The notes below the pieces were generated by a model. The model was not told the origin of the DNA and ran no database searches. It saw only the letters and a program-made list of their open reading frames with translations. Below, piece after piece: positions 3,549 to 58,028 of a stretch of 64,000 nucleotides of DNA. The stretch covers positions 203,784 to 267,783 of IMG/VR virus record IMGVR_UViG_3300020188_000808. One strand, written 5' to 3'. Within the stretch, counting starts at the first letter, position 1. Each line of letters starts with the position of its first letter. The translations under genes were made by a program, and so were the position numbers.

Positions 3549-3556
3549 TATTTATA
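3549..3556 (-). promoter_or_regulatory. T4-type late promoter TATAAATA
   Basis: Exact T4 late consensus, 5 nt before the ATG at 3543. Confidence 0.7.
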
Positions 3557-3576: not shown

Positions 3577-4461
3577 TTATTGCTGGTTCTGTCCAGCTTC
3601 AGCTTGTTTCATAAGTGCTTTGAACTTACCAAACAGTTGAGGATTAGACATCATACTTTGAATAGCAGTTGCATATGGAGCAATCGCTTTAATAATATTT
3701 GGCGGTAATGTTTCACCTGATGATATTTTATCTAAGCCTTTTGCAACTTGGGCACCACTTGCTTTACCACCAACAACACCTTTTAATGCTGTTGCTTTTT
3801 GTGCAACCTGTTGTGTTTGTTTGTTATCGTCGCCTTTTGCTAAGCCAGTAACTTTGCCAATTACGCCGCCTTGTTCTGCACCAGCTCTTTTGATATCATC
3901 TCTACTAGCACCTGTGGCATTCGCCGCAAAATCTACTGCCTTGTCTGCTACTTTACCTGCAACTTTTTTAACAATGCCTGCACCTGGTGCTTCTTTTACA
4001 AATTTGTTTTTAGCTTTATTAAATCCCTTCCATCCTGTTTCGGGCTTTAATTTAACTGCACCGTCACTCCAATCTGATCCAGTCCATGTCCAAGTTACAG
4101 TACCATCGTTGTATGCACTACCTGGTTTTAAATCATCTATTGTTTTAGGTTGTTTTTGAGTTTGTGCTTTAGGATCTGGTGTCGGTGTTGGTGTTGGTTT
4201 TGCTTTAGTCTTTGTGTCTTTTTTAGAAGTGTCGCCTTTAGCAATCCAATCATCAGTTTCTTTATCGTCAATGCCACCGCCGGGTGCGATTGGTTCTTTA
4301 CTGCCGTGTGCGCCACCAAACTTTTTTGAAAATGCTTTATTTAGATTACTAAGACCTGTACCTAAACGATTGTTGCGAACTAAATCATCTACTTTACCAA
4401 GCGATGCTTTAGTGTTTAACCAACCTCCTGGAGGTGCTTCTACAAGATCTTCAACTTTCAT
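3577..4461 (-). CDS. Lys/Gly/Ala-rich putative capsid-internal protein
   Basis: N-terminus MKVEDLVE|APPGG, internal FVKE|APGAG, PT linker. Confidence 0.55.
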   Translation of the reverse strand: MKVEDLVEAPPGGWLNTKASLGKVDDLVRNNRLGTGLSNLNKAFSKKFGGAHGSKEPIAPGGGIDDKETDDWIAKGDTSKKDTKTKAKPTPTPTPDPKAQTQKQPKTIDDLKPGSAYNDGTVTWTWTGSDWSDGAVKLKPETGWKGFNKAKNKFVKEAPGAGIVKKVAGKVADKAVDFAANATGASRDDIKRAGAEQGGVIGKVTGLAKGDDNKQTQQVAQKATALKGVVGGKASGAQVAKGLDKISSGETLPPNIIKAIAPYATAIQSMMSNPQLFGKFKALMKQAEAGQNQQ

Positions 4462-4464
4462 TGA

Positions 4465-5127
4465 CTAAGCCTTTACGCAATTATCAACGGTCTTGCCGCC
4501 TTTTTTCTTAGTACCCATACGCTTGTAGCCTTTCCAGCATACTTTGCCGTCAACGCCTTTTTGTTTTTCTTCGTCAAGTGTAGTGTAACTAGGCTTGCCA
4601 CAATCTTTACATTTACTATTTGCTACTTTTTCGTTTAGCATATTAGCTAATGTGTTTTTGTATGATTCGTTTTTCTTTTTGTCTGCTTTAGAAGCGTGTA
4701 CTGCTTTACGCTGTGCATCGTTCTTGTACTTGCCTTCATTCTTTTGATTTTCTTTGTAGCAATCGCAATGTTCGCAATCAGGTCCGCATTTACATTCTGT
4801 TACAGGCTTTCCGCAACATGCTTCTGGACACATTTTTTCTTTAGCTTCGTTAGCTGTAGATTCTGCTACTTCGTCAAACTTCATTTGGTAGTCTAAGTGA
4901 TGGTAAACACTACCTAAATAATCTGCTGATTTAGTAATTTTAGCTTGTACCCAACCTTCTAAGCCTGCTGACTCGTCAACACCTTTAAGCATTTCGTGTA
5001 GTTTGATACTGTATTTTGCAATTTTGTATAGTTCAGCTCTAGCCATTTGTACTTCATGGTCTGACTCAGCTTTGTAAGCCATGTCTGCTAAACCTTCTTT
5101 TAGTTGTTTTTTATTCATATCCATCAC
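4465..5127 (-). CDS. Modular putative capsid-internal protein with Cys-rich and CWKGY modules
   Basis: Modules: LEGWVQAKITKSADYL; CPEACCGKPVTECKCGPDCEHCDC; EGKYKNDAQRKAVHA; CWKGYKRMGTKKKGGKTVDNCV. Confidence 0.6.
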   Translation of the reverse strand: MMDMNKKQLKEGLADMAYKAESDHEVQMARAELYKIAKYSIKLHEMLKGVDESAGLEGWVQAKITKSADYLGSVYHHLDYQMKFDEVAESTANEAKEKMCPEACCGKPVTECKCGPDCEHCDCYKENQKNEGKYKNDAQRKAVHASKADKKKNESYKNTLANMLNEKVANSKCKDCGKPSYTTLDEEKQKGVDGKVCWKGYKRMGTKKKGGKTVDNCVKA

Positions 5128-5143
5128 TTTATCTCTCTAATAG

Positions 5144-5151
5144 TATTTATC
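5144..5151 (-). promoter_or_regulatory. Late promoter GATAAATA
   Basis: Overlaps the TAA stop of the upstream gene. Confidence 0.65.
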
Positions 5152-5377
5152 GTTTAGCTACTTTGCCACCAAAGAAACTGTCTGACGCATCTAGTGCATT
5201 AACCACTGTGCCGTCTGCTTTTTTCTTAGACTTCTTTTTAGGTACACCGTTCTTATCACGTGGTATTTGACCATGTGCATGTACTGGATTTGCCACAGTT
5301 GCTATAGCACCTGCACTAGTACCGCCTGCTGTTGCAGTTTCTTCTAGGTCTTTTTGAAATAGTTCACGTATTAACAT
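5147..5377 (-). CDS. Small basic putative capsid-internal protein
   Basis: MLIRELFQKDLEE|TATAGGTSAGAIA, Lys-rich tail. Confidence 0.55.
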   Translation of the reverse strand: MLIRELFQKDLEETATAGGTSAGAIATVANPVHAHGQIPRDKNGVPKKKSKKKADGTVVNALDASDSFFGGKVAKR

Positions 5378-5382
5378 AGTAT

Positions 5383-5390
5383 TATTTATC
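5383..5390 (-). promoter_or_regulatory. Late promoter GATAAATA
   Basis: 5 nt before the ATG at 5377; overlaps the upstream stop. Confidence 0.7.
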
Positions 5391-6276
5391 CTGATTTAGC
5401 CATCTTAGTTGCTGTTGCATACATAACTGCTTCAGCATCTTTGCCATAACGCTTTTTAAAGTCACTTTTATTCTTTTTCATACCCTTTACTATGCGTTCT
5501 TTTTCTGCTTCTTCGTCTTTATCTAGTTCACGTTCTTCTACAGGTTTATTAAAGTAATCCTTTAATAGTCCAGCAGTACGCTCGAACTTGTGATCTTTGT
5601 GCTTAAATCCAACTCCACCTTTAGCTTCCCAGTTTCTAATATTAGATCCAAAGTCGTCAATTAGTATGTTAGGTGTACCATCAGGTTGTTTAGCCCACTT
5701 GTATTTGTCTGCGGATATAATAACTTCTTTAGGTGGAAAAAACGCTAAGTTCTTTTTAATCCATTCACGCTTGTGTGGTTCTGCTTTAGGGTCGTTAGCT
5801 AACGGAGCACTTAATATGTTGTACTCTCCTTTTAGCTCTTTAATAATGTTTAATAAGTTTTGAGCATTTTTTGTTAATGGTAATGATAACCAAAAATCAT
5901 CTTTGTCTCTAATTGTTTGTAATGCACTTTCAATGTCTGTAATTTGTCGCCAATCTTTACCTACTATCTTCTTCCAAGCTGGAAAGAAATCAGCTAATAC
6001 TCCGTCCATGTCTACGTATATTTCACTAACTGCTGATAGTTCTTTTGATTTTAATTCTTTTATTTGCGACTCAGTCATCCCCATATTAAATAAAGTATTT
6101 GGTTTTGTATTTTTATGTGCTTTCTTATGCATAGTATACAACGGCTTTCCATCTTTGTCAACCGAATTACCAAATTTCTTTGCTTCAATACTAGTTTGAT
6201 CCACGCCAACATCAGGAGTTGTGTTAACACCTTTTACAATGCGTCCTACGCCTTCTGATATCTCATGCCATCTCAT
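5386..6276 (-). CDS. 5'(3')-deoxyribonucleotidase-like HAD domain flanked by small modules
   Basis: YVDMDGVLADF...ILSAP...KREW...LIDD. N-terminal ISE|GVGRIVKG and C-terminal VEE|RELDK..FKKRYGKDAEAVMYATATK modules. Confidence 0.8.
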   Translation of the reverse strand: MRWHEISEGVGRIVKGVNTTPDVGVDQTSIEAKKFGNSVDKDGKPLYTMHKKAHKNTKPNTLFNMGMTESQIKELKSKELSAVSEIYVDMDGVLADFFPAWKKIVGKDWRQITDIESALQTIRDKDDFWLSLPLTKNAQNLLNIIKELKGEYNILSAPLANDPKAEPHKREWIKKNLAFFPPKEVIISADKYKWAKQPDGTPNILIDDFGSNIRNWEAKGGVGFKHKDHKFERTAGLLKDYFNKPVEERELDKDEEAEKERIVKGMKKNKSDFKKRYGKDAEAVMYATATKMAKSG

Positions 6277-6500
6277 TTCTTTTTACGTCCTCTAAACCCT
6301 TGTGGCATATTTTGGTTAGTCATATAAGGTCTACTAAACCAAAGTTTAAACCAATCTTGATCACCTGGTTTTACACCCATTGCTTTTTCTTTTTTCTTTA
6401 GAGCTGTTGCAGTAATACTAGGATTTTCGTCAATCTTATACTCCGAATAACCTGAGAATTCATTAATCCCTGCTAGTCGTTGTAAAGTTTTAATATCCAT
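6273..6500 (-). CDS. Small hypothetical protein
   Basis: 75 aa, LQRLAGINE...VKPGDQDWFKLWF, tightly packed between its neighbours. Confidence 0.65.
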   Translation of the reverse strand: MDIKTLQRLAGINEFSGYSEYKIDENPSITATALKKKEKAMGVKPGDQDWFKLWFSRPYMTNQNMPQGFRGRKKK

Positions 6501-8440
6501 TACTTCTTTCCACTCTTCATGTTAGCACACCAGTGATACATTTTAGCCTTTTCGCCACTTGCATTTTTAGCACGTTTGCGTAGTGCTGTAACACTACCAT
6601 TGCAACTAGCACCTGACTTTTTTACACGCCCTGGTCTGCTTTTACCTTTTTTTTTACCGTCAGCAAAGTTTTCTTCTACATTTTCGTTATGTTTAAAGTA
6701 TTCTATTTGTCCTAGACGCTTTTCAGCCGCTTTACGACTATCGTATGTGCCAAGTTTCTTTTTACCGTCTTTACTGTAGATAACATACTTGTCACCTTGC
6801 TTACGAATAGTTTCTTCTATAGTTTCTTTTTTCTTACCGTCAGCAAAGTTTTCGTCTAGCATGTTTTCTAATACTTCATCTGCCATATGCACACGAGCAT
6901 ACTCTGCACCTGTTAAACGTAGTGCATCATATCTGTGATGTCCGTTTACAATACGTCCTTTGCGATCAATTTGTAAAGGTGCATAATCGTCGTTTAATAC
7001 GTTTACTAGTTGCTTACCTAGTTTATGCCAATGGCGTTCGCTTTGTACAGTTTTAAGTTTGTCTAGTTTAATTTTACCTGGCGACCCAAGTTTCTTTAAC
7101 TGCGGAGGTGCTTTACCGCCTGTGGGTTTGTCATCAAAATGTGCATCTTGATAACCTTGAGCATCTTGTGTTTGATAACCAATACGATTAAGTTGCTTCA
7201 TAAGGTACTTCATTTCTTTAGCACCTGCATAAGGAGCAATCATAATGTCTGGTTCATCTACATTAGATCCTGCTGGCATTGACTTTAGATTAGCTAAATT
7301 AGTACCTAATTTTAAAAAGTCGTATGCTGTGTCTGACTTAGTTAAGAAAGAATTTTTAGGATTAGGAAACATTTTACCTTCGTGGTGTCCTTTTTTAAGA
7401 GGCTTTTTCTTTTTCTTTTCACTAGCATTTAACCCACTTTGAAATGTTGCAAATTTTGCCTTGCCTTGCTCAATTTTTGAGTTAGACGCTGATGGAACAG
7501 AGTCGGAAGGACGTTCGTTAACATCAACTTCTTTAGTTAAGTTAGCTTTAAGTCTATCATATGGGTCTTGTGTTGAAATTTCTTTATTTTTTGGAACTTT
7601 AATACTTACATTAATGTTTAAGTTATTGAATAAGTTCTTAACACCGTTAACACTTTTTAGTGCTTTTTGCATTAGTTCTTTTTCATCTTCAGCTCTACTA
7701 TCGTAAAACTTAATAAATTTCTGTGCTTCTTGTGGAGTAATTAATACTTCACCACCGCTACTTGCACCACCTGTATCTTTATAACTTAATGGAAAAGGCA
7801 TACTGTCTTTTCTATCAGCAATGTTATATAATACTTCAATCTTTGGTCGTTGTTGCTTTACACTATATTCATCTAAACTTTCATCAACAATGCCCATGCC
7901 TTTTCTAACTTGGTCATACATTTGCTGTGCCATCTGTGCATTAGCAACACCTTGTTTGAAACTATCAAAGTCACCTTCTTGTGCCGCGGCTCTCATTTTA
8001 CTTGCACTCATGCCTTCAGCACCATCTGCATCAGGATCACGTTCGCCTGCACTTACAATGTTAATACTGTTAAAGTTATAGTCTTTACCGTTGTAGTCAT
8101 TTAATAATTTAGTAAATGAATCAACTCTGTCTGAACCTGCTACATATATAATATCTGTATAGCCTTTAGCTTCTAGACTTTGCATAGCTTGGATAATAGT
8201 TTTTACTTTAGGATCACCTATTTCAATACCTGGAAAACTTTTAGATGCAAAGTACATCTTTTCTGGGAATGGTAGTGGATCTGTTTTAGGTTTTTGTGTT
8301 TGACTTAAAAATAAAAAAGGATCGCCCTTTTGTGATTTTACTACGTCAGCTAATTTAGCATGTCCAATAGTTGGAGGATTCATTCTTCCAAATGCAAACA
8401 CCGCAGTCTTAGGTGCTTCAAAAAGCTCACGTAAAAGCAT
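6500..8440 (-). CDS. Multidomain protein: cytidyltransferase-like (HIGH) domain, ParB/Srx-like domain and small basic modules
   Basis: FAFGRMNPPTIGH, AGSDR, RDPDADGAEGMSASKMR. ParB-like LQIDRKGRIVNGHHRYDA. ENFADGKKK occurs twice. Confidence 0.8.
   Translation of the reverse strand: MLLRELFEAPKTAVFAFGRMNPPTIGHAKLADVVKSQKGDPFLFLSQTQKPKTDPLPFPEKMYFASKSFPGIEIGDPKVKTIIQAMQSLEAKGYTDIIYVAGSDRVDSFTKLLNDYNGKDYNFNSINIVSAGERDPDADGAEGMSASKMRAAAQEGDFDSFKQGVANAQMAQQMYDQVRKGMGIVDESLDEYSVKQQRPKIEVLYNIADRKDSMPFPLSYKDTGGASSGGEVLITPQEAQKFIKFYDSRAEDEKELMQKALKSVNGVKNLFNNLNINVSIKVPKNKEISTQDPYDRLKANLTKEVDVNERPSDSVPSASNSKIEQGKAKFATFQSGLNASEKKKKKPLKKGHHEGKMFPNPKNSFLTKSDTAYDFLKLGTNLANLKSMPAGSNVDEPDIMIAPYAGAKEMKYLMKQLNRIGYQTQDAQGYQDAHFDDKPTGGKAPPQLKKLGSPGKIKLDKLKTVQSERHWHKLGKQLVNVLNDDYAPLQIDRKGRIVNGHHRYDALRLTGAEYARVHMADEVLENMLDENFADGKKKETIEETIRKQGDKYVIYSKDGKKKLGTYDSRKAAEKRLGQIEYFKHNENVEENFADGKKKGKSRPGRVKKSGASCNGSVTALRKRAKNASGEKAKMYHWCANMKSGKK
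6654..6853. repeat. 20-bp direct repeat TTACCGTCAGCAAAGTTTTC, 180 bp apart
   Basis: Identical copies at 6654-6673 and 6834-6853 encoding ENFADGK. Confidence 0.9.
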
Positions 8441-8778
8441 TAGTACTCTCCGTCTCTAAGTGCTTCCATTTCTTCACTACAAATTACTTCTGCTAAAGAT
8501 TTATATTCTTCTTTAGTTAAAAGTTTTGTAGGATCTTTTGAAATGTTAAATTTATTACAATACTGTTCACAGCATCTATCAATCATAGGTGATAAATCTT
8601 GAGGTACTGGACTTTTGCCGCCTTTTAATTTATCTTGTAGTTTTGCCATTGTTGGATAATACTGTTTGCGATAGAACATTGGGTCGTTCTTCATAAACAC
8701 TTGTAAGTCGCCAATGACATCAAATCCTAACTCATTTTCTTTTGTTGGGTCTAAATCTGCAAACTCAGTTATTTTCAT
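8440..8778 (-). CDS. Hypothetical protein
   Basis: Probable start MKITEFAD at 8778, right after the upstream stop. DL.VFMKND.MFYRK.YYP. Confidence 0.65.
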   Translation of the reverse strand: MKITEFADLDPTKENELGFDVIGDLQVFMKNDPMFYRKQYYPTMAKLQDKLKGGKSPVPQDLSPMIDRCCEQYCNKFNISKDPTKLLTKEEYKSLAEVICSEEMEALRDGEY

Positions 8779-8779
8779 A

Positions 8780-9370
8780 TTACCACTTCCTACATGACCA
8801 GTAACGTGCCTTAGTACGTGGTCCTGGATTATCACAGTTGTGTCTAGCACGGAAACTTCTTCTACGTGCTGGATTAGACTTTTTAATACTCATTGCCTTA
8901 CCTTTGACACTTGATCCACCGTGTCCAAAGTTTACTTTTTTAACATTTCCTGTTTTAGGATCTTTTACATATACCTTAAACTTCTTAACATCACCTTGCA
9001 TAGGTTTACCAAGTTTTACTTTACGTCCTTGATATTCTGCTTCGTCTACAATATCATCTTCGTTATACCACATAACACCGTACTGTTCATAAAACTCATC
9101 ATCATCGTCATAAGTTTCTTCAATAATATCTTCGCCAAGCCCTGCACTAATTTCAATATCAAAGTCATCGTAACCTTGTTCGAACATGTAGTTTGCTAGT
9201 CTGTTAGCATACTCGTTTGATTCGTCTTCTGAAAGTTGTTTTGGTAAAGCAATTTCCCATGCTGTACCACCTTGCTCAGTTTCGTAAAGATTTTGATCAG
9301 GAAAGATACTTTCGTCTAACAACTTAGTTGTTTCCTGTTTTTCCATTACTATTCTTACAAAATGTTCCAT
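8780..9370 (-). CDS. Hypothetical protein with acidic N-terminus and basic C-terminal module
   Basis: IVDE|AEYQGRKVKLGKP...RRRSFRARHNC...ARYWSCRKW; recalled from T4-like marine phage proteins. Confidence 0.7.
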   Translation of the reverse strand: MEHFVRIVMEKQETTKLLDESIFPDQNLYETEQGGTAWEIALPKQLSEDESNEYANRLANYMFEQGYDDFDIEISAGLGEDIIEETYDDDDEFYEQYGVMWYNEDDIVDEAEYQGRKVKLGKPMQGDVKKFKVYVKDPKTGNVKKVNFGHGGSSVKGKAMSIKKSNPARRRSFRARHNCDNPGPRTKARYWSCRKW

Positions 9371-9721: not shown

Positions 9722-10378
9722 TTATTTATCTAGATCTTTACTACTTATAATTTTATCAATTCTCATCAAATCCTTCTTTAAGAACAATCTAATTAAGGTT
9801 ATAGTGGCAAAATCTTTAACATACATGTACATACCTTTGAGATTATATCCGCGTTGTATGTTACTTAATACTCTATTACCTATCTTAATTTTACTTTTAT
9901 GTTTGATGCAGAAGTTCGCAAGGTTCGGATCAGCAGTTCCGTTAAGTGTAATTTTATAACCAAAGTCTATAGTATCATTAATAATAATATTAGGGGTTAA
10001 GATTGCATTATCTTTGGGCATGTGTACTACGCAAACTGCGTTTAGTTTACTAGTTATAGTTTTAACCCATTCATAGTTATTAGTGTATATTCCTAAGTGA
10101 TAACTTTCACAACGAATTTTAAAATTTTCTTTTTGTTTTATGAATAACGAAAGTAATATCTGTAGATCGGATAGTTCTTCAGAAGTAACATTTACTGTTC
10201 TAAATCCAGACCCCCATTTAACAAAACCTTCAGCTTCGTATTGTTGAATAGCAGTATCGATAGACTTTCTTGCATGAGAAAAGTTTTTATTTCTAAAAAC
10301 AAAGCCTAATGCATTATGAAAGTCTACCTTATACTTGTATTGATCGTAGAATAGTTTATGAGAATCAACTTTTATCAA
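9722..10378 (-). CDS. Hypothetical protein
   Basis: 218 aa ORF overlapping the clpA stop; start codon uncertain. Confidence 0.6.
   Translation of the reverse strand: MIKVDSHKLFYDQYKYKVDFHNALGFVFRNKNFSHARKSIDTAIQQYEAEGFVKWGSGFRTVNVTSEELSDLQILLSLFIKQKENFKIRCESYHLGIYTNNYEWVKTITSKLNAVCVVHMPKDNAILTPNIIINDTIDFGYKITLNGTADPNLANFCIKHKSKIKIGNRVLSNIQRGYNLKGMYMYVKDFATITLIRLFLKKDLMRIDKIISSKDLDK
9723..9730 (-). promoter_or_regulatory. Late promoter GATAAATA
   Basis: 5 nt before the ATG at 9717. Confidence 0.7.
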
Positions 10379-12632
10379 CTGTTTCGGGCTCCTTGACTGT
10401 ATTTACAGTAGTCTGTAAGTCAAACGCTCCGTCTTTAATGTCGATATGTAGTTTACCACCGTTCTTTAGGTCACCAAACAGTAATACTTTAGACAACGGA
10501 GTTTTAATATCATTATCAATTACACGTTGCAACGGTCTTGCACCCATCTTGGGATCAAATCCTTTGTCTACTAAGTAATCAATTGCTTCGTCTGAAATAG
10601 TAGTTACAACATTCTTTTCAGTAAGCATTGTCTTAAGATCAACTAAGAACTTACCAACAATTTTAATCATTGTATTCTTTTCTAATCTACCAAATGTCAT
10701 AACACCGTCAAGTCTGTTACGGAATTCTGGAGCAAAGAACTTTTTAAGTTCGCCATCGTCGTGGTCTTTCTCCATATCGCCAAATCCTACTGCATTAGTA
10801 TCAGCTTCAGCTGAACCTAAGTTTGTTGTAAGGATTAATACAAGGTTTCTACAGTCAGCAGTCTTACCGTTACTACCTGTAACAAATCCGTTGTCCATAA
10901 TTTGTAATAATAATGAACTTACATCTGGGTGTGACTTCTCAATTTCATCAAGTAGTAATACACAGTTTGGATTCTCTTGTACTTTAGTAATTAGTAAGCC
11001 ACTATTTTCTTCAAAGCCTACATATCCTGGAGGCGAACCAATTAGTTTAGCAACACTATGTTTCTCTTGATACTCTGACATATCAAATCTAATTAGTTTT
11101 ACACCTAATTGTTTTGCAAGTTGTTTCGCTGTTTCAGTTTTACCTACACCAGTTGGCCCCATAAACACAAACGATCCAATTGGTTTGTTTTCTGCTTTAA
11201 GTCCTGCTTGTGCTACATGAATCTTATCAACAATGCTGTCAATTGAACTGTCTTGTCCGTAAATTGCGGCTTTCATATTATGGTTTAAATTAGCAAGGTT
11301 ACTAGTTTCAGTTTCCATAATTTGTTCTTTAGGCATGTTAATCATCTTAGCAAGTTCAAACTGTACTTCTTTCATACCAACTGTCTTGTTTGGTTCACTT
11401 GTAATATTAAATCTTGAACATGCTACATCTAATAAGTCAATAGCTTTGTCAGGTAATTTTTTATCTGTTTGATATTTCACACTAAGTTTAATTGCAGTAT
11501 CAATAGCTTCTTCTGTAATAGATACTTTGTGAAAGTCTTCGTAATATTTTTTAATACCTAATAAAATATCTTTAGTAATTTCATTAGTAGGCTCGTCAAC
11601 ACTTACACGAGCAAATCTACGCATCAATGCACGATCTTTTTCAAAGAACTTTCTATATTCTTCCCATGTAGTTGATGCTACAACTTTAATATTTCCTTTA
11701 GTAAGAATAGGCTTTAGCATATTAGCTAAGTCATTTGATTGACCACTACCGCCAGCACCTGCTCCACTAATCATATGGGCTTCGTCAATAAACATAATAG
11801 TTTTGCCTTTCTTCTTAAGGCCAGCAATAACTAATTTAAATCTTTCTTCAAAGTCTCCTCGGTATTTACTACCTGCTAACATACTACCAATGTCTAAGTT
11901 GTATACTGCATATTCTTTAAGAAACTCTGGAACATTGTTATTAACAATATTATATGCAAGTCCTTCTGCAATAGCAGTTTTACCTACACCAGGCTCACCA
12001 ACTAGCAATACATTGTTCTTCTGTCTACGGCCAAGTGCTAGTGCAATGCTTTCGAGTTCTTCTGAACGTCCAATAACAGGATCAATTTTTCCTGTTTCAG
12101 CATCAGTATTAAGATTAGTTGTAAACGAACGTAATGCACGATTGGCCATCCCGGCCATTTCCTCATCTTCAAAGTTAGCTTCAAGTTCATTGTTTAGATA
12201 GTCGGCAAACTTTTCTTTTTCAATGCCTACTTCGTTAATAAAGTACAATGCCCAACTTTTCTTTTCGTTAAACATACTTAGGAATACATCGCTAACTTCA
12301 ATAGAGTTGCGACCACTAAACAACACTTGTGTAAATGCTCTGTTTAGTACACGTTCTACAGCCTGTGTTTTCTTAGGCTTCCATTTTTTAGGAAGTTCCG
12401 CTCCTTCAGGCATTAGTAAGTCGTTACATTTAGTTTTAAGATAGTTCTCTACATTCTTTTTTATAAAATCAGGGTCAGTATCATTATACCCAGATAGAAT
12501 ATTAGAAAAGTCTTCTTCACATAACATTGCAAACAACAAATGCTCTAATGTAAGATACTCGTGATTTAACTTTTTAGTTACATCAAGTGCTTTGTCAAAT
12601 ATTTTCTGTAAATTTTCGCTAGGTTCAACCAT
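10365..12632 (-). CDS. clpA: ClpA-like AAA+ unfoldase
   Basis: Clp N domain. Walker A GEPGVGKT and GPTGVGKT, GSKYRGDFEER, RFDMSEYQEKH, PPGYVG. VGF ClpP-docking loop; no ClpB middle domain. Confidence 0.93.
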   Translation of the reverse strand: MVEPSENLQKIFDKALDVTKKLNHEYLTLEHLLFAMLCEEDFSNILSGYNDTDPDFIKKNVENYLKTKCNDLLMPEGAELPKKWKPKKTQAVERVLNRAFTQVLFSGRNSIEVSDVFLSMFNEKKSWALYFINEVGIEKEKFADYLNNELEANFEDEEMAGMANRALRSFTTNLNTDAETGKIDPVIGRSEELESIALALGRRQKNNVLLVGEPGVGKTAIAEGLAYNIVNNNVPEFLKEYAVYNLDIGSMLAGSKYRGDFEERFKLVIAGLKKKGKTIMFIDEAHMISGAGAGGSGQSNDLANMLKPILTKGNIKVVASTTWEEYRKFFEKDRALMRRFARVSVDEPTNEITKDILLGIKKYYEDFHKVSITEEAIDTAIKLSVKYQTDKKLPDKAIDLLDVACSRFNITSEPNKTVGMKEVQFELAKMINMPKEQIMETETSNLANLNHNMKAAIYGQDSSIDSIVDKIHVAQAGLKAENKPIGSFVFMGPTGVGKTETAKQLAKQLGVKLIRFDMSEYQEKHSVAKLIGSPPGYVGFEENSGLLITKVQENPNCVLLLDEIEKSHPDVSSLLLQIMDNGFVTGSNGKTADCRNLVLILTTNLGSAEADTNAVGFGDMEKDHDDGELKKFFAPEFRNRLDGVMTFGRLEKNTMIKIVGKFLVDLKTMLTEKNVVTTISDEAIDYLVDKGFDPKMGARPLQRVIDNDIKTPLSKVLLFGDLKNGGKLHIDIKDGAFDLQTTVNTVKEPETVDKS

Positions 12633-13159
12633 TATGTTATGTACGCTCCAAATCTTTTTAATAATTTTGATTGCTTTTTCTTAGCAATGTCGAGTTTTAA
12701 TTTACTTACACGGTCAATGTAATTGATTCCGTATAAGTGATCGTATTCATGTCCTGCAATTCTTGCATTCCATCCTACTAGTTCTATTGTACACTCTTTA
12801 CGACTAGAGTCAAGACACTCTATTACCATTCCTGTTGGTCTTTTAACCTTAAAAAATAGTAATGGAAAACTTAAACAACCTTCTTCGCCTAACACAGTCT
12901 CCTGACTTACGGCTGTAATTTTAGGATTAATAATTGCAAAAGGTTTATTATCTTCATAACCTTCTAATCCTTCAGGTTTAATAATAAAGATTTGTGCATC
13001 AAGCCCAACTTGATTAGCACTAAGTCCTACACCGTTTTCTTTTTCCATAATTTCAATCATTTCTGATTCAATTTGTTTAGCATCGTACTTGTCAAAGTCA
13101 AACGGCGCTACTTTTTTATCTAAGAACGGGTCGGGGAATCTAAGTAGTTTTAGTTTCAT
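12632..13159 (-). CDS. def: Peptide deformylase
   Basis: GVGLSANQVG, EGCLS, HEYDH motifs. Confidence 0.95.
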   Translation of the reverse strand: MKLKLLRFPDPFLDKKVAPFDFDKYDAKQIESEMIEIMEKENGVGLSANQVGLDAQIFIIKPEGLEGYEDNKPFAIINPKITAVSQETVLGEEGCLSFPLLFFKVKRPTGMVIECLDSSRKECTIELVGWNARIAGHEYDHLYGINYIDRVSKLKLDIAKKKQSKLLKRFGAYIT

Positions 13160-13988
13160 CTTGTATCTTTCTTATTTTTTCTCTTAATAGTTCGTCGTTA
13201 ATTTTTGGTGTAACACCATTTACTTTAATATATAAGTTGCCTGTTTGTCCTTGTCGTCTATTTGGTAATCCCTGTCCACCAACACTAAAAACTGTTCCTG
13301 GGTTTGACCCTGCTGGTACATTAACACTTAATGTACGTCCGTGTATTGTTTGGATGGTTATGTTTGTGCCTAAAATGAAATCAAATAAATTTAACTTCTT
13401 GTCTATATATAAATTTATGCCATCTTGAGTGTACTCGGGGTGCTTTCTGACTCTTATAAGAACATGCAAATCACCTCTTGGTGCTTGGCTATGTGCATCA
13501 CTGCCCATGCCTGCATACCGTATTCTATCACCTGCTTGTACACCTGGTGGTAATTTAATTTCTACTGTTTCTTCTCTACCACTAGGCAATCTGTAAGTTG
13601 CAATAACTTCTTTACCGGTAACAATATCTTCTAAATCAATATCAGCACCAATAGTTATATCTTGGTTCCTCATATGTCTACGCATATTTGGGTTTGCTCC
13701 AAACATTTGTCCAAATATATCTTCAAAATTAGCACCACCAAAAGCATTTGAAAAATGACTCTGCTGTTGTGCTTGTGCTTGTTGAGGATCAGCAGTTCCA
13801 TACTGATCATACATCTGTCTTTTTTGTGGATCTTTTAGTGCAGAGTATGCTTCGTTAATTTGTTTGAACTTTTCATCACTTCCACCATTCCGATCAGGGT
13901 GGTGTTGCATACTTTGTTTCTTGTATGCTTTCTTCAGCTCTGAGTCTGTGGCGTTTCTTGGAACACCTAAAAGTTCGTAATAATCCAT
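13140..13988 (-). CDS. dnaJ: DnaJ-family co-chaperone lacking the Zn finger (CbpA-like)
   Basis: J domain with HPD, G/F linker (FEDIF), C-terminal GDL domain; no CxxCxGxG repeats. Confidence 0.9.
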   Translation of the reverse strand: MDYYELLGVPRNATDSELKKAYKKQSMQHHPDRNGGSDEKFKQINEAYSALKDPQKRQMYDQYGTADPQQAQAQQQSHFSNAFGGANFEDIFGQMFGANPNMRRHMRNQDITIGADIDLEDIVTGKEVIATYRLPSGREETVEIKLPPGVQAGDRIRYAGMGSDAHSQAPRGDLHVLIRVRKHPEYTQDGINLYIDKKLNLFDFILGTNITIQTIHGRTLSVNVPAGSNPGTVFSVGGQGLPNRRQGQTGNLYIKVNGVTPKINDELLREKIRKIQDETKTT

Positions 13989-18587: not shown

Positions 18588-19298
18588 CTATTTTGTTAGG
18601 ACTACTACATACCCATTGTTCTCAACCAAATAATTTTGACCATACTTTGATATATTGTAGTCTCCAATATATTTAGTTAAGTAAATAATCTCGGCAAAAG
18701 AATTGGCATCATATGATTCAGTAATTCTTTCGTGGATGTCTTTATGCTCTCCAAAATCTACAACATTGTACTGTAATGGTTCAGCATATATTTTTGAGAA
18801 TTTAATTTTATTTTCAACAAGATCAATACTGTCAAGATAGCTTTTACTAAAAAAGTTCTTGTAGTTGTCCATATTGTTTTCGTTTACTCTTATTTCGTAT
18901 GCACCTTTATCTAATGGAACTGTTGCTAAAATGTTTTCCATTTGTGCTTCTTGGCTTTTAAAACTTTTGTAATAGCGGAATTTAAACTTATCTATGTTAG
19001 CTAATTTACCAACACCGTCTAACATTTCTATGATTTGTTTTGGAACATCTTTATGACGTTCAATTTCTACAAATACTTTATATGTTCCATCAGTCTGTTC
19101 TCCTGAAGTAACATCAGCATCTAGTATGTAAGGATAACCTTTCTCAAAAAAGTTCATTAAATCTTTTGCTGGTCCTTCAGACATGCAACTAAAACTGCAT
19201 ACTACAATATCCTTATCATCACCCATTTTACTTTTAAAACTATCAATTTCAAAAATAGGTAAAACTAAATCGTTAAGATCTCCGGCAATCAATCCCAT
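18588..19298 (-). CDS. Hypothetical phage protein
   Basis: 236 aa; IDSFKSKMG.D..I...FFEKGY..ILDADV..GE. Confidence 0.7.
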   Translation of the reverse strand: MGLIAGDLNDLVLPIFEIDSFKSKMGDDKDIVVCSFSCMSEGPAKDLMNFFEKGYPYILDADVTSGEQTDGTYKVFVEIERHKDVPKQIIEMLDGVGKLANIDKFKFRYYKSFKSQEAQMENILATVPLDKGAYEIRVNENNMDNYKNFFSKSYLDSIDLVENKIKFSKIYAEPLQYNVVDFGEHKDIHERITESYDANSFAEIIYLTKYIGDYNISKYGQNYLVENNGYVVVLTK

Positions 19299-58015: not shown

Positions 58016-58020
58016 ACTAT

Positions 58021-58028
58021 TATTTATC
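58021..58028 (-). promoter_or_regulatory. Late promoter GATAAATA
   Basis: 5 nt before the ATG at 58015. Confidence 0.7.

Follow-up and report, generated by a model that had tools for sequence, protein, structure and literature searches.

A cluster of modular genes in an uncultured marine T4-like phage with leaders resembling the T4 capsid-targeting sequence and junctions that fit the head protease

Why should eight neighbouring genes of a marine T4-like phage, which encode otherwise unrelated short modules and nucleotide enzymes, begin with a similar short N-terminal sequence and repeat a hydrophobic-x-Glu motif between their modules? The genes lie in a 64,000-nucleotide stretch (the window), which is the end of a 268-kb T4-like contig of an uncultured phage. 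The original prediction was that one targeting tag packages these proteins into the head, where a prohead protease of the T4 gp21 type cuts them into many peptides and enzymes. The analysis described below supports this core inference, with every prediction that could be tested being borne out, and suggests that the phage probably loads enzymes and small basic proteins into its head and cuts them loose there, although cleavage, packaging and ejection are inferred for this phage by analogy rather than from proteomic or N-terminal data. The features of the cluster are collected in Table 1.

Table 1. Coordinates of the open reading frames, leaders, modules and promoter-like boxes of the cluster (positions within the window; residue numbers refer to each protein)
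Position	Strand	Gene	Feature
9723..9730	-		GATAAATA, T4-late-promoter-like box upstream of the 112-aa virion-protein-like gene (9717-9379); likely start of a late transcript running through A-E
9370-8780	-	A	Open reading frame
9341..9370	-	A	Leader, residues 1-10, M-x-x-F-x-x-I-V-x-E, T4-CTS-like
9041..9340	-	A	Acidic pro-region, residues 11-110 (net charge -27), ending in V-D-E at E110
8783..9040	-	A	Basic module, residues 111-196 (pI 11, net +21, phrog_7595); mobile, a free-standing gene in other virus types
8778-8440	-	B	Open reading frame
8443..8778	-	B	112 aa; leader MKITEFAD with Asp at position 8
8440-6500	-	C	Open reading frame
8417..8440	-	C	Leader, residues 1-8 (MLLRELFE), followed by A-P
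7880..8416	-	C	Nucleotidyltransferase domain, residues 9-187 (T-I-G-H and S-x-S-x-x-R motifs), ending at the V-D-E187 / L-D-E191 linker
6851..7867	-	C	Middle modules, residues 192-530: folded module at 198-284, module at about 353-445, ParB/Srx-like stretch at about 457-529; ends in L-D-E530
6671..6811	-	C	Small basic module, residues 544-590 (phrog_3684 and phrog_2859), between I-E-E543 and V-E-E590
6503..6670	-	C	Terminal basic NFADGK module, residues 591-646 (net +15, 2 Cys)
6500-6273	-	D	Open reading frame
6276..6500	-	D	75 aa, basic C-terminus; conserved N-terminus without a consistent leader-type Glu
6276-5386	-	E	Open reading frame
6253..6276	-	E	Leader, residues 1-8 (MRWHEISE), followed by G
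6055..6252	-	E	First module, residues 9-74 (GVGRIVKGVN type), ending in an internal relic leader M-T-E-S-Q-I-K-E
5533..6054	-	E	HAD-type 5'(3')-deoxyribonucleotidase domain (NT5C; D-M-D-G-V motif), ending in V-E-E248
5389..5532	-	E	C-terminal RELDK module, residues 249-296 (phrog_12788)
5383..5390	-		GATAAATA, late-promoter-like box 5 nt upstream of the ATG of gene F
5377-5147	-	F	Open reading frame
5150..5377	-	F	Leader, residues 1-13, ending in L-E-E, then T-A-T-A-G-G-T-S-A-G..., then a basic tail
5144..5151	-		GATAAATA, late-promoter-like box upstream of gene G, overlapping the stop codon of F
5118-4465	-	G	Open reading frame
4468..5118	-	G	Leader, residues 1-8 (MNKKQLKE), followed by G; module 9-86 ending in an internal leader-like M-K-F-D-E-V-A-E; Cys-rich module 87-183 (10 Cys) ending in L-D-E183; basic CWKGY module 184-217
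4461-3577	-	H	Open reading frame
3580..4461	-	H	Leader, residues 1-8 (MKVEDLVE), followed by APPGG; basic module 9-157 ending in V-K-E157, followed by APGAG; basic module 158-294

The eight contiguous genes, the N-terminal tags and all nine [ILV]-x-E sites listed in the original prediction are present (A E110; C E187, E191, E530, E543 and E590; E E248; G E183; H E8 and E157). However, the description of the tags needs correction. Gene G, which had not been listed as tagged, also carries the tag, since its orthologues show that its start is the ATG at 5118. Gene A starts with a 10-residue T4-like leader, and its relatives start MSKTFTDYLKE or MTKTFKDYLLE. Gene B has Asp at the position where its orthologues have ...E-F-x-E; in T4, Asp at P1 blocks processing but not targeting (PMC9026906). 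Gene D has no clear tag. There is not one tag, as had been proposed, but at least two related leader types of 8 and 10 residues, together with internal relic leaders.

The usual form of the leader is M-[KR]-[LIF]-x-[EDQ]-[LI]-x-E, which is essentially confined to this cluster within the genome. A strict DNA-level version of this pattern hits the 268-kb genome 3 times, all inside this 5.8-kb cluster, while the reversed-pattern control gives 0. A loose version gives 24 hits, 6 of them in the cluster (2.2% of the genome), against 15 and 1 for the control. A position matrix built from relatives ranks C, E, G and H as the top 4 of 2139 ATG-ORF starts, with C scoring highest and F sixth, although this ranking is partly circular because the matrix came from orthologues. 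In contrast, the overall density of [LIVMF]-x-E is only modestly raised, with an observed/expected ratio of 1.55 in the cluster against 1.19 in the rest of the proteome; the signal is positional, not compositional.

Among relatives, the leader is conserved in front of the nucleotidyltransferase in more than 60 orthologues of gene C, whose lengths range from 191 to 646 aa, and it precedes 21 unrelated families, of which about 17 are credible. Positions not fixed by the search pattern are also biased, with K/R at position 2 in 72%, a hydrophobic residue at position 3 in 79%, and G/A/S/N at P1' in 83%. The leaders of C and F differ at synonymous codon positions, so the peptide is what is conserved. 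Residues 2-8 of C are predicted to form a helix. To examine the link to T4, a DNA pattern for the T4 capsid-targeting sequence (CTS), M-x-x-[FY]-x-x-[FY]-[LIVFM]-x-E, was searched, which finds ipII, ipIII and gp61.1 in T4, 4 cluster genes in C48C1, 2 in P-SSM3 and the Syn9 gp184 nucleotidyltransferase, with reversed-pattern controls giving 0 in these four phages. HTVC008M gave 1 hit against 1 control hit per strand, which is not significant. In the genome studied here, the pattern finds the gene g063 but none of the eight window genes; gene A is one residue off, and the 8-residue leader does not match the 10-residue pattern itself.

A protease of the T4 gp21 type is encoded in the same genome. 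A gp21-type (Peptidase_S77, PF03420) prohead protease was identified at G000:C1:99637-100095 (92.1 bits against a cut-off of 27), next to the scaffold and capsid genes. The capsid proteins of T4, Syn9, P-SSM3, C48C1, HTVC008M and this phage all keep L-x-E aligned with or adjacent to the known LTE65 site of T4 (W-L-N-E followed by T in this phage), suggesting by alignment, not by measured cleavage, that the (L/I)-x-E specificity is retained. Protein F repeats this capsid site, L-x-E followed by T-A-T-A-G, in that its leader is followed by a copy of the residues after the capsid protein's predicted cleavage site. T4 gp61.1 and Syn9 gp190 are built the same way.

Modules that follow the leader in one phage lie inside longer proteins in others, and the middle modules of C sit in different genes in relatives. 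Across 89 distinct internal contexts of modules that elsewhere follow a leader, P1 is Glu in 66%, P3 is hydrophobic in 54%, and both hold in 40%, whereas random positions in the same proteins give 6.8%, 23% and 1.6%. However, part of these statistics rests on related sequences, which are not independent; about a third of mapped junctions lack Glu in the exact register; and an unbiased BLAST-breakpoint analysis gave only a twofold Glu peak (0.18 against about 0.09). A search of a database of 5.8 billion proteins showed that Glu precedes the NFADGK module in 109 of 110 homologues, 43 of which are stand-alone genes with an 8-9-residue leader. In the 59 longer contexts, P3 is I, V, F, L or M in 49, against a hydrophobic residue in 9 of 59 at P2 and 10 of 59 at P4 (p about 1e-20), although P3 is sometimes A, Q, T or K at NFADGK junctions in the close relatives. 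For the AEYQG module of gene A, Glu is at P1 in 33 of 33 contexts and M/I/V/L at P3 in 32 of 33, and in A orthologues P3 is always V, I, L or M while P4 varies. For the RELDK module, Glu is at P1 in 15 of 15 contexts, and in orthologues of H, APPGG is always preceded by [LI]-x-E, whether the leader has 8 or 15 residues. In an AlphaFold model of protein C, E187/E191 (residues 188-197 being disordered) and E590 lie in disordered linkers between confident domains, while E530 and E543 lie in low-confidence predicted helices.

A control was provided by viruses of other morphotypes. In a siphovirus, a podovirus, a Roseobacter phage and an archaeal spindle virus, which are assumed from their morphotypes to lack a T4-type head protease, the AEYQG module is a stand-alone gene starting M-A-x-Y-x-G. 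Glu is therefore a junction feature, not part of the module.

The enzymes named in the original prediction were examined individually. The cytidyltransferase-like domain of C was confirmed by a PHROG profile (E=1e-55), and its model, with pLDDT above 90 for residues 9-185, gave Foldseek hits to PPAT and NadD/NadM with probability 1.0 and TM 0.6-0.71, i.e., a predicted PPAT/NMN-adenylyltransferase fold of the HIGH-motif superfamily. The motifs T-I-G-H and S-A-S-K-M-R can be read in the sequence, while Pfam PF01467 scores 19.9 bits, just under its cut-off of 21. The NT5C 5'-nucleotidase of E was likewise confirmed (PF06941, 31.3 bits against a cut-off of 24.8; phrog_2643, E=7.6e-22), with D-M-D-G-V at residues 89-93. 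In relatives, this domain starts anywhere from residue 28 to 370 in ORFs of 236-840 aa, and it is fused to the nucleotidyltransferase in some of them. The ParB/Srx-like part is only weakly supported, by phrog_620 (E=5.3e-5 over 39 residues) and a G-H-H-R motif, with no Pfam hit at E of 1 or less and low model confidence (pLDDT 48-65).

Homologues of the nucleotidyltransferase have been detected repeatedly in cyanophage virions, namely those of S-SM1 (25 peptides), S-SCSM1, S-CBWM1 and S-CREM2 (PMC3037559 Table S8, PMC9602691, PMC10665884). The authors note, however, that contamination by abundant cytoplasmic protein is not excluded (PMC10665884). In the papers that could be searched, the presence of this metabolic-looking enzyme in virions has been left unexplained, and a leader and junction rule would account for it.

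Taken together, these observations lead to the proposal, held with reasonable though not full confidence, that the cluster is the counterpart of the T-even internal-protein (IP) genes, i.e., a late-expressed, fast-shuffling set of head-cargo genes. The short amphipathic leader would dock each protein onto the scaffolding core while the prohead forms, as the T4 CTS does, and the gp21-type protease would then cut after the Glu of hydrophobic-x-Glu, removing the leader and, in the multi-module proteins, separating modules at the linkers that carry the same motif. The predicted products are a PPAT/NMNAT-like nucleotidyltransferase, a 5'(3')-deoxyribonucleotidase, a possible ParB/Srx-like domain and about a dozen small, very basic, partly Cys-rich peptides, which probably sit with the packaged DNA, as T4 IPs do, and may leave with it. 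Acidic pro-regions, such as that of A, would mask the basic modules until cleavage. A module only needs the junction motif upstream of it to be released, so modules can move freely between neighbouring genes.

An alternative, which appears unlikely, is that only the N-terminal leader works, and that the internal junctions are relics of fusions between neighbouring leader-bearing genes and are no longer cut, the proteins being packaged intact. In agreement with this, 15% of mapped internal junctions still carry a Met 7-10 residues upstream, i.e., a fossil leader, G and E contain such internal leader-like stretches, E530 and E543 lie in predicted helices, and processing of homologous head proteins is not always retained in giant phages (PMC5694885). 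However, relics should decay, whereas P1 Glu and the hydrophobic P3 are kept position-specifically in NFADGK contexts with no Met and unrelated upstream sequence, P4 drifts freely in A orthologues while P3 does not, E187/E191 and E590 lie in disordered linkers, and the predicted new N-terminus of the AEYQG module equals the natural N-terminus of the stand-alone genes.

It is still less likely that these are cytoplasmic auxiliary or host-takeover proteins that never enter the head, with the shared N-terminus serving translation, regulation or turnover and the Glu-rich junctions being ordinary linker composition. The enzymes are usually annotated as metabolic genes, the possibility of carry-over was raised for the virion proteomes (PMC10665884), and one late-promoter-like box also precedes a 2OG-Fe(II) oxygenase gene. 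Against this, the leader resembles the experimentally defined T4 CTS and is found by the same pattern in relatives, F copies the capsid cleavage site, the nucleotidyltransferase was found in at least four independent virion proteomes, the leader is conserved at the peptide level with synonymous changes, and the control with other virus types ties the junction Glu to T4-like phages. A chance or compositional artefact of Glu-rich, Lys-rich proteins, which the modest overall motif density and the weak breakpoint test might suggest, is contradicted by the genome-wide specificity of the leader, the P1/P3 signal against random positions in the same proteins, the independent database test and the control with other virus types.

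The closest known system is that of the T4 internal proteins IPI/IPII/IPIII and Alt, in which the CTS is sufficient for packaging and is cut at I-A-E, while Alt is cut at ITE-6 and LTE-619 (PMC9026906, PMC5694885). In both cases, a short leader ending in (I/L)-x-E followed by a small residue is shared by otherwise unrelated, mostly basic, dispensable-looking proteins, a gp21-family protease is encoded in the same genome, an enzyme is among the cargo (Alt in T4 and, by inference, a nucleotidyltransferase and a nucleotidase here), and gene content is hypervariable behind a conserved leader, as reported for T-even IP loci (PMC3012670, PMC9026906). However, there is no sequence homology to IPI-III or Alt, and T4 IPs are single-module, whereas many of the proteins here are strings of 2-6 independent modules joined by the cleavage motif, with acidic pro-regions, whose modules move between adjacent genes and also occur as free genes in unrelated viruses. 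In the giant phages phiKZ, 201phi2-1 and SPN3US, a protease of the same superfamily cuts many head proteins after Glu, some at several sites, and propeptides are thought to act in targeting (PMC5694885, PMC10052503). The motif there has a small residue at P3 (S/A/G-x-E, or A-x-E), which does not fit the NFADGK and AEYQG junctions; the proteins are unrelated, and these phages have no short common N-terminal leader of this type.

The cyanomyovirus gene block between helicase gp41 and primase gp61 (Syn9 gp183-gp190; T4-GC190 'cytidyltransferase'; T4-GC426) is orthologous, holding the same nucleotidyltransferase, the same small modules and the capsid-N-arm mimic, and members of it were detected in virions (PMC3037559 Table S8). 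In the papers that could be searched, these genes are annotated as metabolic or hypothetical, and no targeting leader or junction rule is described. The nucleotidyltransferase alone matches 562 phage records. The rule could predict virion cargo in hundreds of marine T4-like genomes and turn a block of "hypothetical" genes into a defined functional class. It would also show that the T4 CTS principle is old and widespread and can be used in polyprotein form, which bears on how phages deliver pre-made proteins into cells, and it suggests short tags and linkers for loading foreign proteins into non-coliphage heads.

A broader and more tentative possibility, rather doubtful at present, is that marine T4-like phages run a general, combinatorial cargo-loading system, in which any module placed behind a leader or behind a [ILVMF]-x-E linker would be carried into the prohead and released by the maturation protease, such that gene fusion, fission and module capture from unrelated viruses would immediately create new virion cargo. 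The cargo would include the capsid-N-arm mimic, conserved from T4 (gp61.1) to cyanophages, and ready-made enzymes (a PPAT/NMNAT-like adenylyltransferase and a deoxyribonucleotidase), which would be injected with the DNA and act before any phage gene is expressed, for example against NAD- or nucleotide-depleting host defences. The action on host nucleotide pools or defences that the original prediction also considered possible remains speculation.

Late expression of the cluster is suggested by the GATAAATA boxes, which resemble TATAAATA, probably the T4 late promoter. In the genome, 36 of 54 ATAAATA boxes lie 60 nt or less upstream of a same-strand gene start, and several of those genes encode baseplate, tail-fibre or virion proteins.

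The 267,783-bp linear IMG/VR contig, of which the window forms the last 64 kb, is estimated to be about 75% complete, and its nearest DNA matches are Pelagibacter phage HTVC008M and Synechococcus myoviruses. The contig encodes a T4 gp21-type prohead protease (PF03420, 92 bits), the gene of which lies beside a scaffold gene and a capsid gene. The eight genes of the cluster, named A to H, are contiguous on the minus strand and tightly packed, some with overlapping stop and start codons. Every N-terminal tag and every hydrophobic-x-Glu site listed in the original prediction is present. However, comparison with orthologues changes some details, i.e., G starts at the ATG at 5118 and carries the tag as well (MNKKQLKE), A begins with a 10-residue T4-like leader, B has Asp where the others have Glu, and D has no consistent tag. 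The coordinates of the genes and of the other features discussed here are collected in the table.

Coordinates of the cluster genes and of additional features (G000:C1, contig of this genome; names beginning with L, loci)
Feature	Sequence	Coordinates	Strand
Gene A	window	9370-8780	minus
Gene A, acidic N-terminal half	window	9041-9340	
Gene A, basic C-terminal module	window	8783-9040	
Gene B	window	8778-8440	minus
Gene C	window	8440-6500	minus
Gene D	window	6500-6273	minus
Gene E	window	6276-5386	minus
Gene F	window	5377-5147	minus
Gene G	window	5118-4465	minus
Gene H	window	4461-3577	minus
Late-promoter-like boxes ending 5 nt before an ATG	window	3549-3556, 5383-5390, 9723-9730, about 58020-58027	
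ClpA/ClpB-like, peptide deformylase and DnaJ-like genes	window	10365-13988	
Gene g063	G000:C1	40337-40903	minus
Three leader-like genes beside the portal, protease, scaffold and capsid genes	G000:C1 (L090)	101825-102070, 107636-109792 and 109803-110318 (4926-5171, 10737-12893, 12904-13419)	
T4 gene 61.1	L089 (T4 NC_000866)	1967-2131 (18966-19130)	
Syn9 gp190	L003	496-1020	
P-SSM3 capsid-arm mimic	L087	11564-12103	
Nucleotidyltransferase-NT5C fusions	L062; L063; L065	5106-6992; 1161-3050; 7980-10361	
AEYQG/AKYQG module	L102 (Nitrosopumilaceae spindle-shaped virus ORF8); L099, L100, L101	398-649 (L102)	

The enzymes proposed in the original prediction were mostly confirmed. Residues 9-187 of C form a HIGH-motif nucleotidyltransferase, with a PHROG match at E=1e-55. 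A PDB sequence search with this domain returned nothing meaningful, and a fold search was thus used, in which the AlphaFold model (pLDDT above 90) matched PPAT and NaMN/NMN adenylyltransferases at TM 0.6-0.71 by Foldseek. E contains an NT5C 5'(3')-deoxyribonucleotidase that scores above Pfam's cut-off. In contrast, the ParB/Srx-like assignment is weak, and no significant Pfam families were found for the small modules. Most predicted modules are strongly basic (pI 9.4-11), while the N-terminal part of A is very acidic. The two halves of A, with net charges of -27 and +21, respectively, are separated by the V-D-E site, and the acidic half looks like a charge-masking pro-region.

Loose N-terminal patterns hit 13% of all genes and did not discriminate, and they were replaced by stricter patterns, controls and a position matrix. 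Eighty related loci were fetched using the nucleotidyltransferase domain, and in more than 60 of them this gene starts with M-[FLRI]-[LI]-[RT]-[EQ]-[LIV]-x-E, followed by A/S-P, although the total length of the leader-bearing orthologues ranges from 191 to 646 aa. Longer forms, up to 1297 aa, start without the leader. In some relatives, the nucleotidyltransferase and the NT5C nucleotidase are fused in one ORF of 629-794 aa, which starts MRANELN and so lacks the terminal Glu of the leader. The same 8-residue leader precedes 21 (about 17 credible) families with unrelated sequence, and the positions left free by the search pattern are also biased, with K/R at position 2 (72%), a hydrophobic residue at position 3 (79%) and G/A/S/N after the Glu (83%). 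Within the 268-kb genome, a strict DNA-level pattern hits three times, all in the cluster, with 0 hits for the reversed control, and a loose pattern gives 6 of 24 hits inside 2.2% of the genome. A matrix built from relatives ranks C, E, G and H first to fourth among 2139 ORF starts; however, this ranking is partly circular, since the matrix came from orthologues. A DNA-level recombination or regulatory cassette was also considered as the source of the shared leader and was rejected, because the leaders of C and F differ at synonymous codon positions and have different upstream DNA, showing that the peptide, not the DNA, is what is conserved.

T4 ipII and ipIII both begin MKTYQEFIAE. In T4, these ten residues suffice for packaging, with residues 4 and 7 mattering for targeting and residues 8 and 10 for processing, and Asp at P1 blocks cutting but not targeting (PMC9026906). 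A DNA pattern for M-x-x-[FY]-x-x-[FY]-[LIVFM]-x-E was run on five phage genomes. It gave three hits in T4 (ipII, ipIII and gene 61.1), five in C48C1 (four of which lie in the nucleotidyltransferase cluster), two in P-SSM3 (both in that cluster) and one in Syn9 (the gp184 nucleotidyltransferase), while the reversed-pattern controls gave 0 for these four genomes. The single hit in HTVC008M is not significant, as the control gave one hit per strand, although its cluster genes do show leader-like starts by eye. In cyanophages, the cluster sits between helicase gp41 and primase gp61, which is also where T4 gene 61.1 lies. These results suggest that the lineage of the window uses a shortened variant of a leader that is recognisably T4-like in its cyanophage relatives. 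The T4-like form also appears in gene A (one residue off the pattern), in A-type relatives and in g063 of the same genome, a 188-aa protein that starts MKTFADYLTE, has a late-promoter-like box 19 nt upstream and is a candidate cargo gene far from the cluster. Three genes beside the portal, protease, scaffold and capsid genes also begin leader-like, i.e., an 81-aa protein between portal and core genes (MILRELFY), a 718-aa protein (MKLNEVIT) and a 171-aa Gly/Ala/Lys-rich protein (MKINQIVTE, followed by ..V-S-E|APGG), and they may be further head-core or cargo proteins.

T4 gp23 is cut after L-T-E65, and the capsid proteins of Syn9, P-SSM3, C48C1, HTVC008M and this phage all have L-x-E at or next to that position, which here reads W-L-N-E followed by T-A-T-A-G-S-T-S-A-G. 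Protein F reads leader, L-E-E and then T-A-T-A-G-G-T-S-A-G, so it copies both sides of that site, and in some F orthologues the copy follows a 9-residue leader directly. T4 gp61.1 and Syn9 gp190 mimic the new N-termini of their own capsid proteins in the same way. T4 gp61.1 (54 aa, annotated hypothetical) starts with a CTS-like MKTFKEFIKE, then resembles the N-terminal arm of mature gp23 (..G-T-T-S-G-A-V.. against ..G-Q-T-S-G-A-V..) and ends in a basic tail, and it looks like an unrecognised internal-protein-type gene of T4 and a counterpart of gene F. Syn9 gp190 and a small protein of P-SSM3 are annotated 'major head protein' but are not capsid proteins; they mimic the first ~20 residues of the mature capsid protein of their own phage (T-T-G-Y-T-G-G-D...) and continue with a basic tail. 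The family T4-GC426, which matches Syn9 gp190 by gene length, was detected in S-SM1 virions.

The modules clearly move. The NT5C domain starts anywhere from residue 28 to 370 in ORFs of 236-840 aa, lies before or after the GVGRIVKG module, and is fused to the nucleotidyltransferase in some contigs, while the middle modules of C sit in the nucleotidase gene in other phages. The overall density of [LIVMF]-x-E, at 1.55 times expectation in the cluster against 1.19 in the proteome, is too weak to carry the claim, and a generic BLAST-breakpoint profile (Glu 0.18 at HSP starts against about 0.09 background) was noisy because HSP ends are fuzzy. Modules that directly follow a leader in one protein were therefore mapped to internal positions in others. 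Among 89 distinct contexts, the preceding residue is Glu in 66%, P3 is hydrophobic in 54%, and both hold in 40%, whereas random positions in the same proteins give 6.8%, 23% and 1.6%, respectively. Many of the misses are one-residue register shifts.

An independent test was run on 5.8 billion proteins. Of the 120 best NFADGK-module homologues, 110 contain the motif, 109 of those have Glu before it, and 43 are stand-alone genes with an 8-9-residue leader. In 59 distinct longer contexts, some of which are leaders whose ORF was called too far upstream, P3 is I, V, F, L or M in 49, while P2 and P4 are hydrophobic in only 9 and 10 (p about 1e-20). For the AEYQG module, P1 is Glu in 33 of 33 contexts and P3 is M, I, V or L in 32 of 33, with P4 drifting within A orthologues; a second database search with this module was dominated by close orthologues and added only about four new independent contexts. 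A phiKZ-type motif was rejected on the basis of the P3 preference.

The AEYQG module also occurs in viruses of other morphotypes, i.e., a Pelagibacter siphovirus, a podovirus, a Roseobacter phage and an archaeal spindle-shaped virus, which were assumed from their morphotype to have no T4-type head protease. In all four, it is a free-standing gene beginning M-A-x-Y-x-G. In contrast, in the Kyanoviridae phages HTVC008M, C48C1 and Melnitz, and in the Flavobacterium myophage immuto, it is the C-terminal part of a longer protein and is preceded by L-E-E, L-T-E, M-M-E or L-D-E. The Glu is thus a junction feature, not part of the module, and the N-terminus predicted after cleavage equals the natural one after Met removal. 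The sharing of this basic AEYQG/AKYQG module (annotated 'HVA1 family protein' in Roseobacter phage CRP-901) by T4-like myoviruses, siphoviruses, podoviruses and an archaeal spindle-shaped virus is a very wide horizontal spread for an 80-aa module of unknown function. In the AlphaFold model of C (mean pLDDT 71.5), the leader is predicted as a short helix, and E187/E191 and E590 lie in segments with pLDDT below 50 between confident domains. However, E530 and E543 lie in low-confidence helices.

The homologous nucleotidyltransferase was detected in virions of S-SM1 (25 peptides, more than gp21 with 8), S-SCSM1, S-CBWM1 and S-CREM2, and the authors speculated about carriage in the virion but gave no mechanism, and noted possible contamination (PMC3037559, PMC9602691, PMC10665884). 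Five full-text searches found no paper describing a CTS-like leader or polyprotein cargo in marine T4-like phages, and a literature search found nothing usable on the expression timing of the orthologous cyanophage genes.

Taken together, the best-supported reading, held with fairly good though not full confidence, is a T4-type internal-protein system, in which the leader is inferred to target proteins to the prohead core and the gp21 homologue to remove the leader and very probably also to cut at the junction motifs, releasing enzymes and basic peptides, while acidic pro-regions would mask the basic modules until then. The main rival, that only the leader is cut and the internal motifs are fusion relics, is less likely, as the position-specific conservation at P3 argues against it. 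A cytoplasmic function is unlikely, and chance still more so. The principle of a CTS plus cleavage at I/L-x-E, together with variable IP loci, is textbook T4 biology. What appears new is its presence in marine T4-like phages in an 8-residue form, its use as a linker rule in multi-module polyproteins that include enzymes, the exchange of these modules with unrelated viruses, and the conserved capsid-N-arm mimic.

NATAAATA boxes, which appear to resemble the T4 late promoter, occur 54 times in the genome, and 36 lie within 60 nt upstream of a same-strand gene start. Several of those genes encode baseplate, fibre or virion proteins, and such boxes stand before the virion-protein-like gene upstream of A, before F and before G. 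Several NATAAATA boxes end only 5 nt before the ATG, with no room for a ribosome-binding site, suggesting leaderless or near-leaderless late mRNAs for a subset of genes. Directly upstream of the cluster lie three genes, identified by eye from their motifs only, for a 755-aa ClpA/ClpB-like AAA+ protein, a peptide deformylase and a DnaJ-like protein, which is an unusual protein-quality-control set for a phage.
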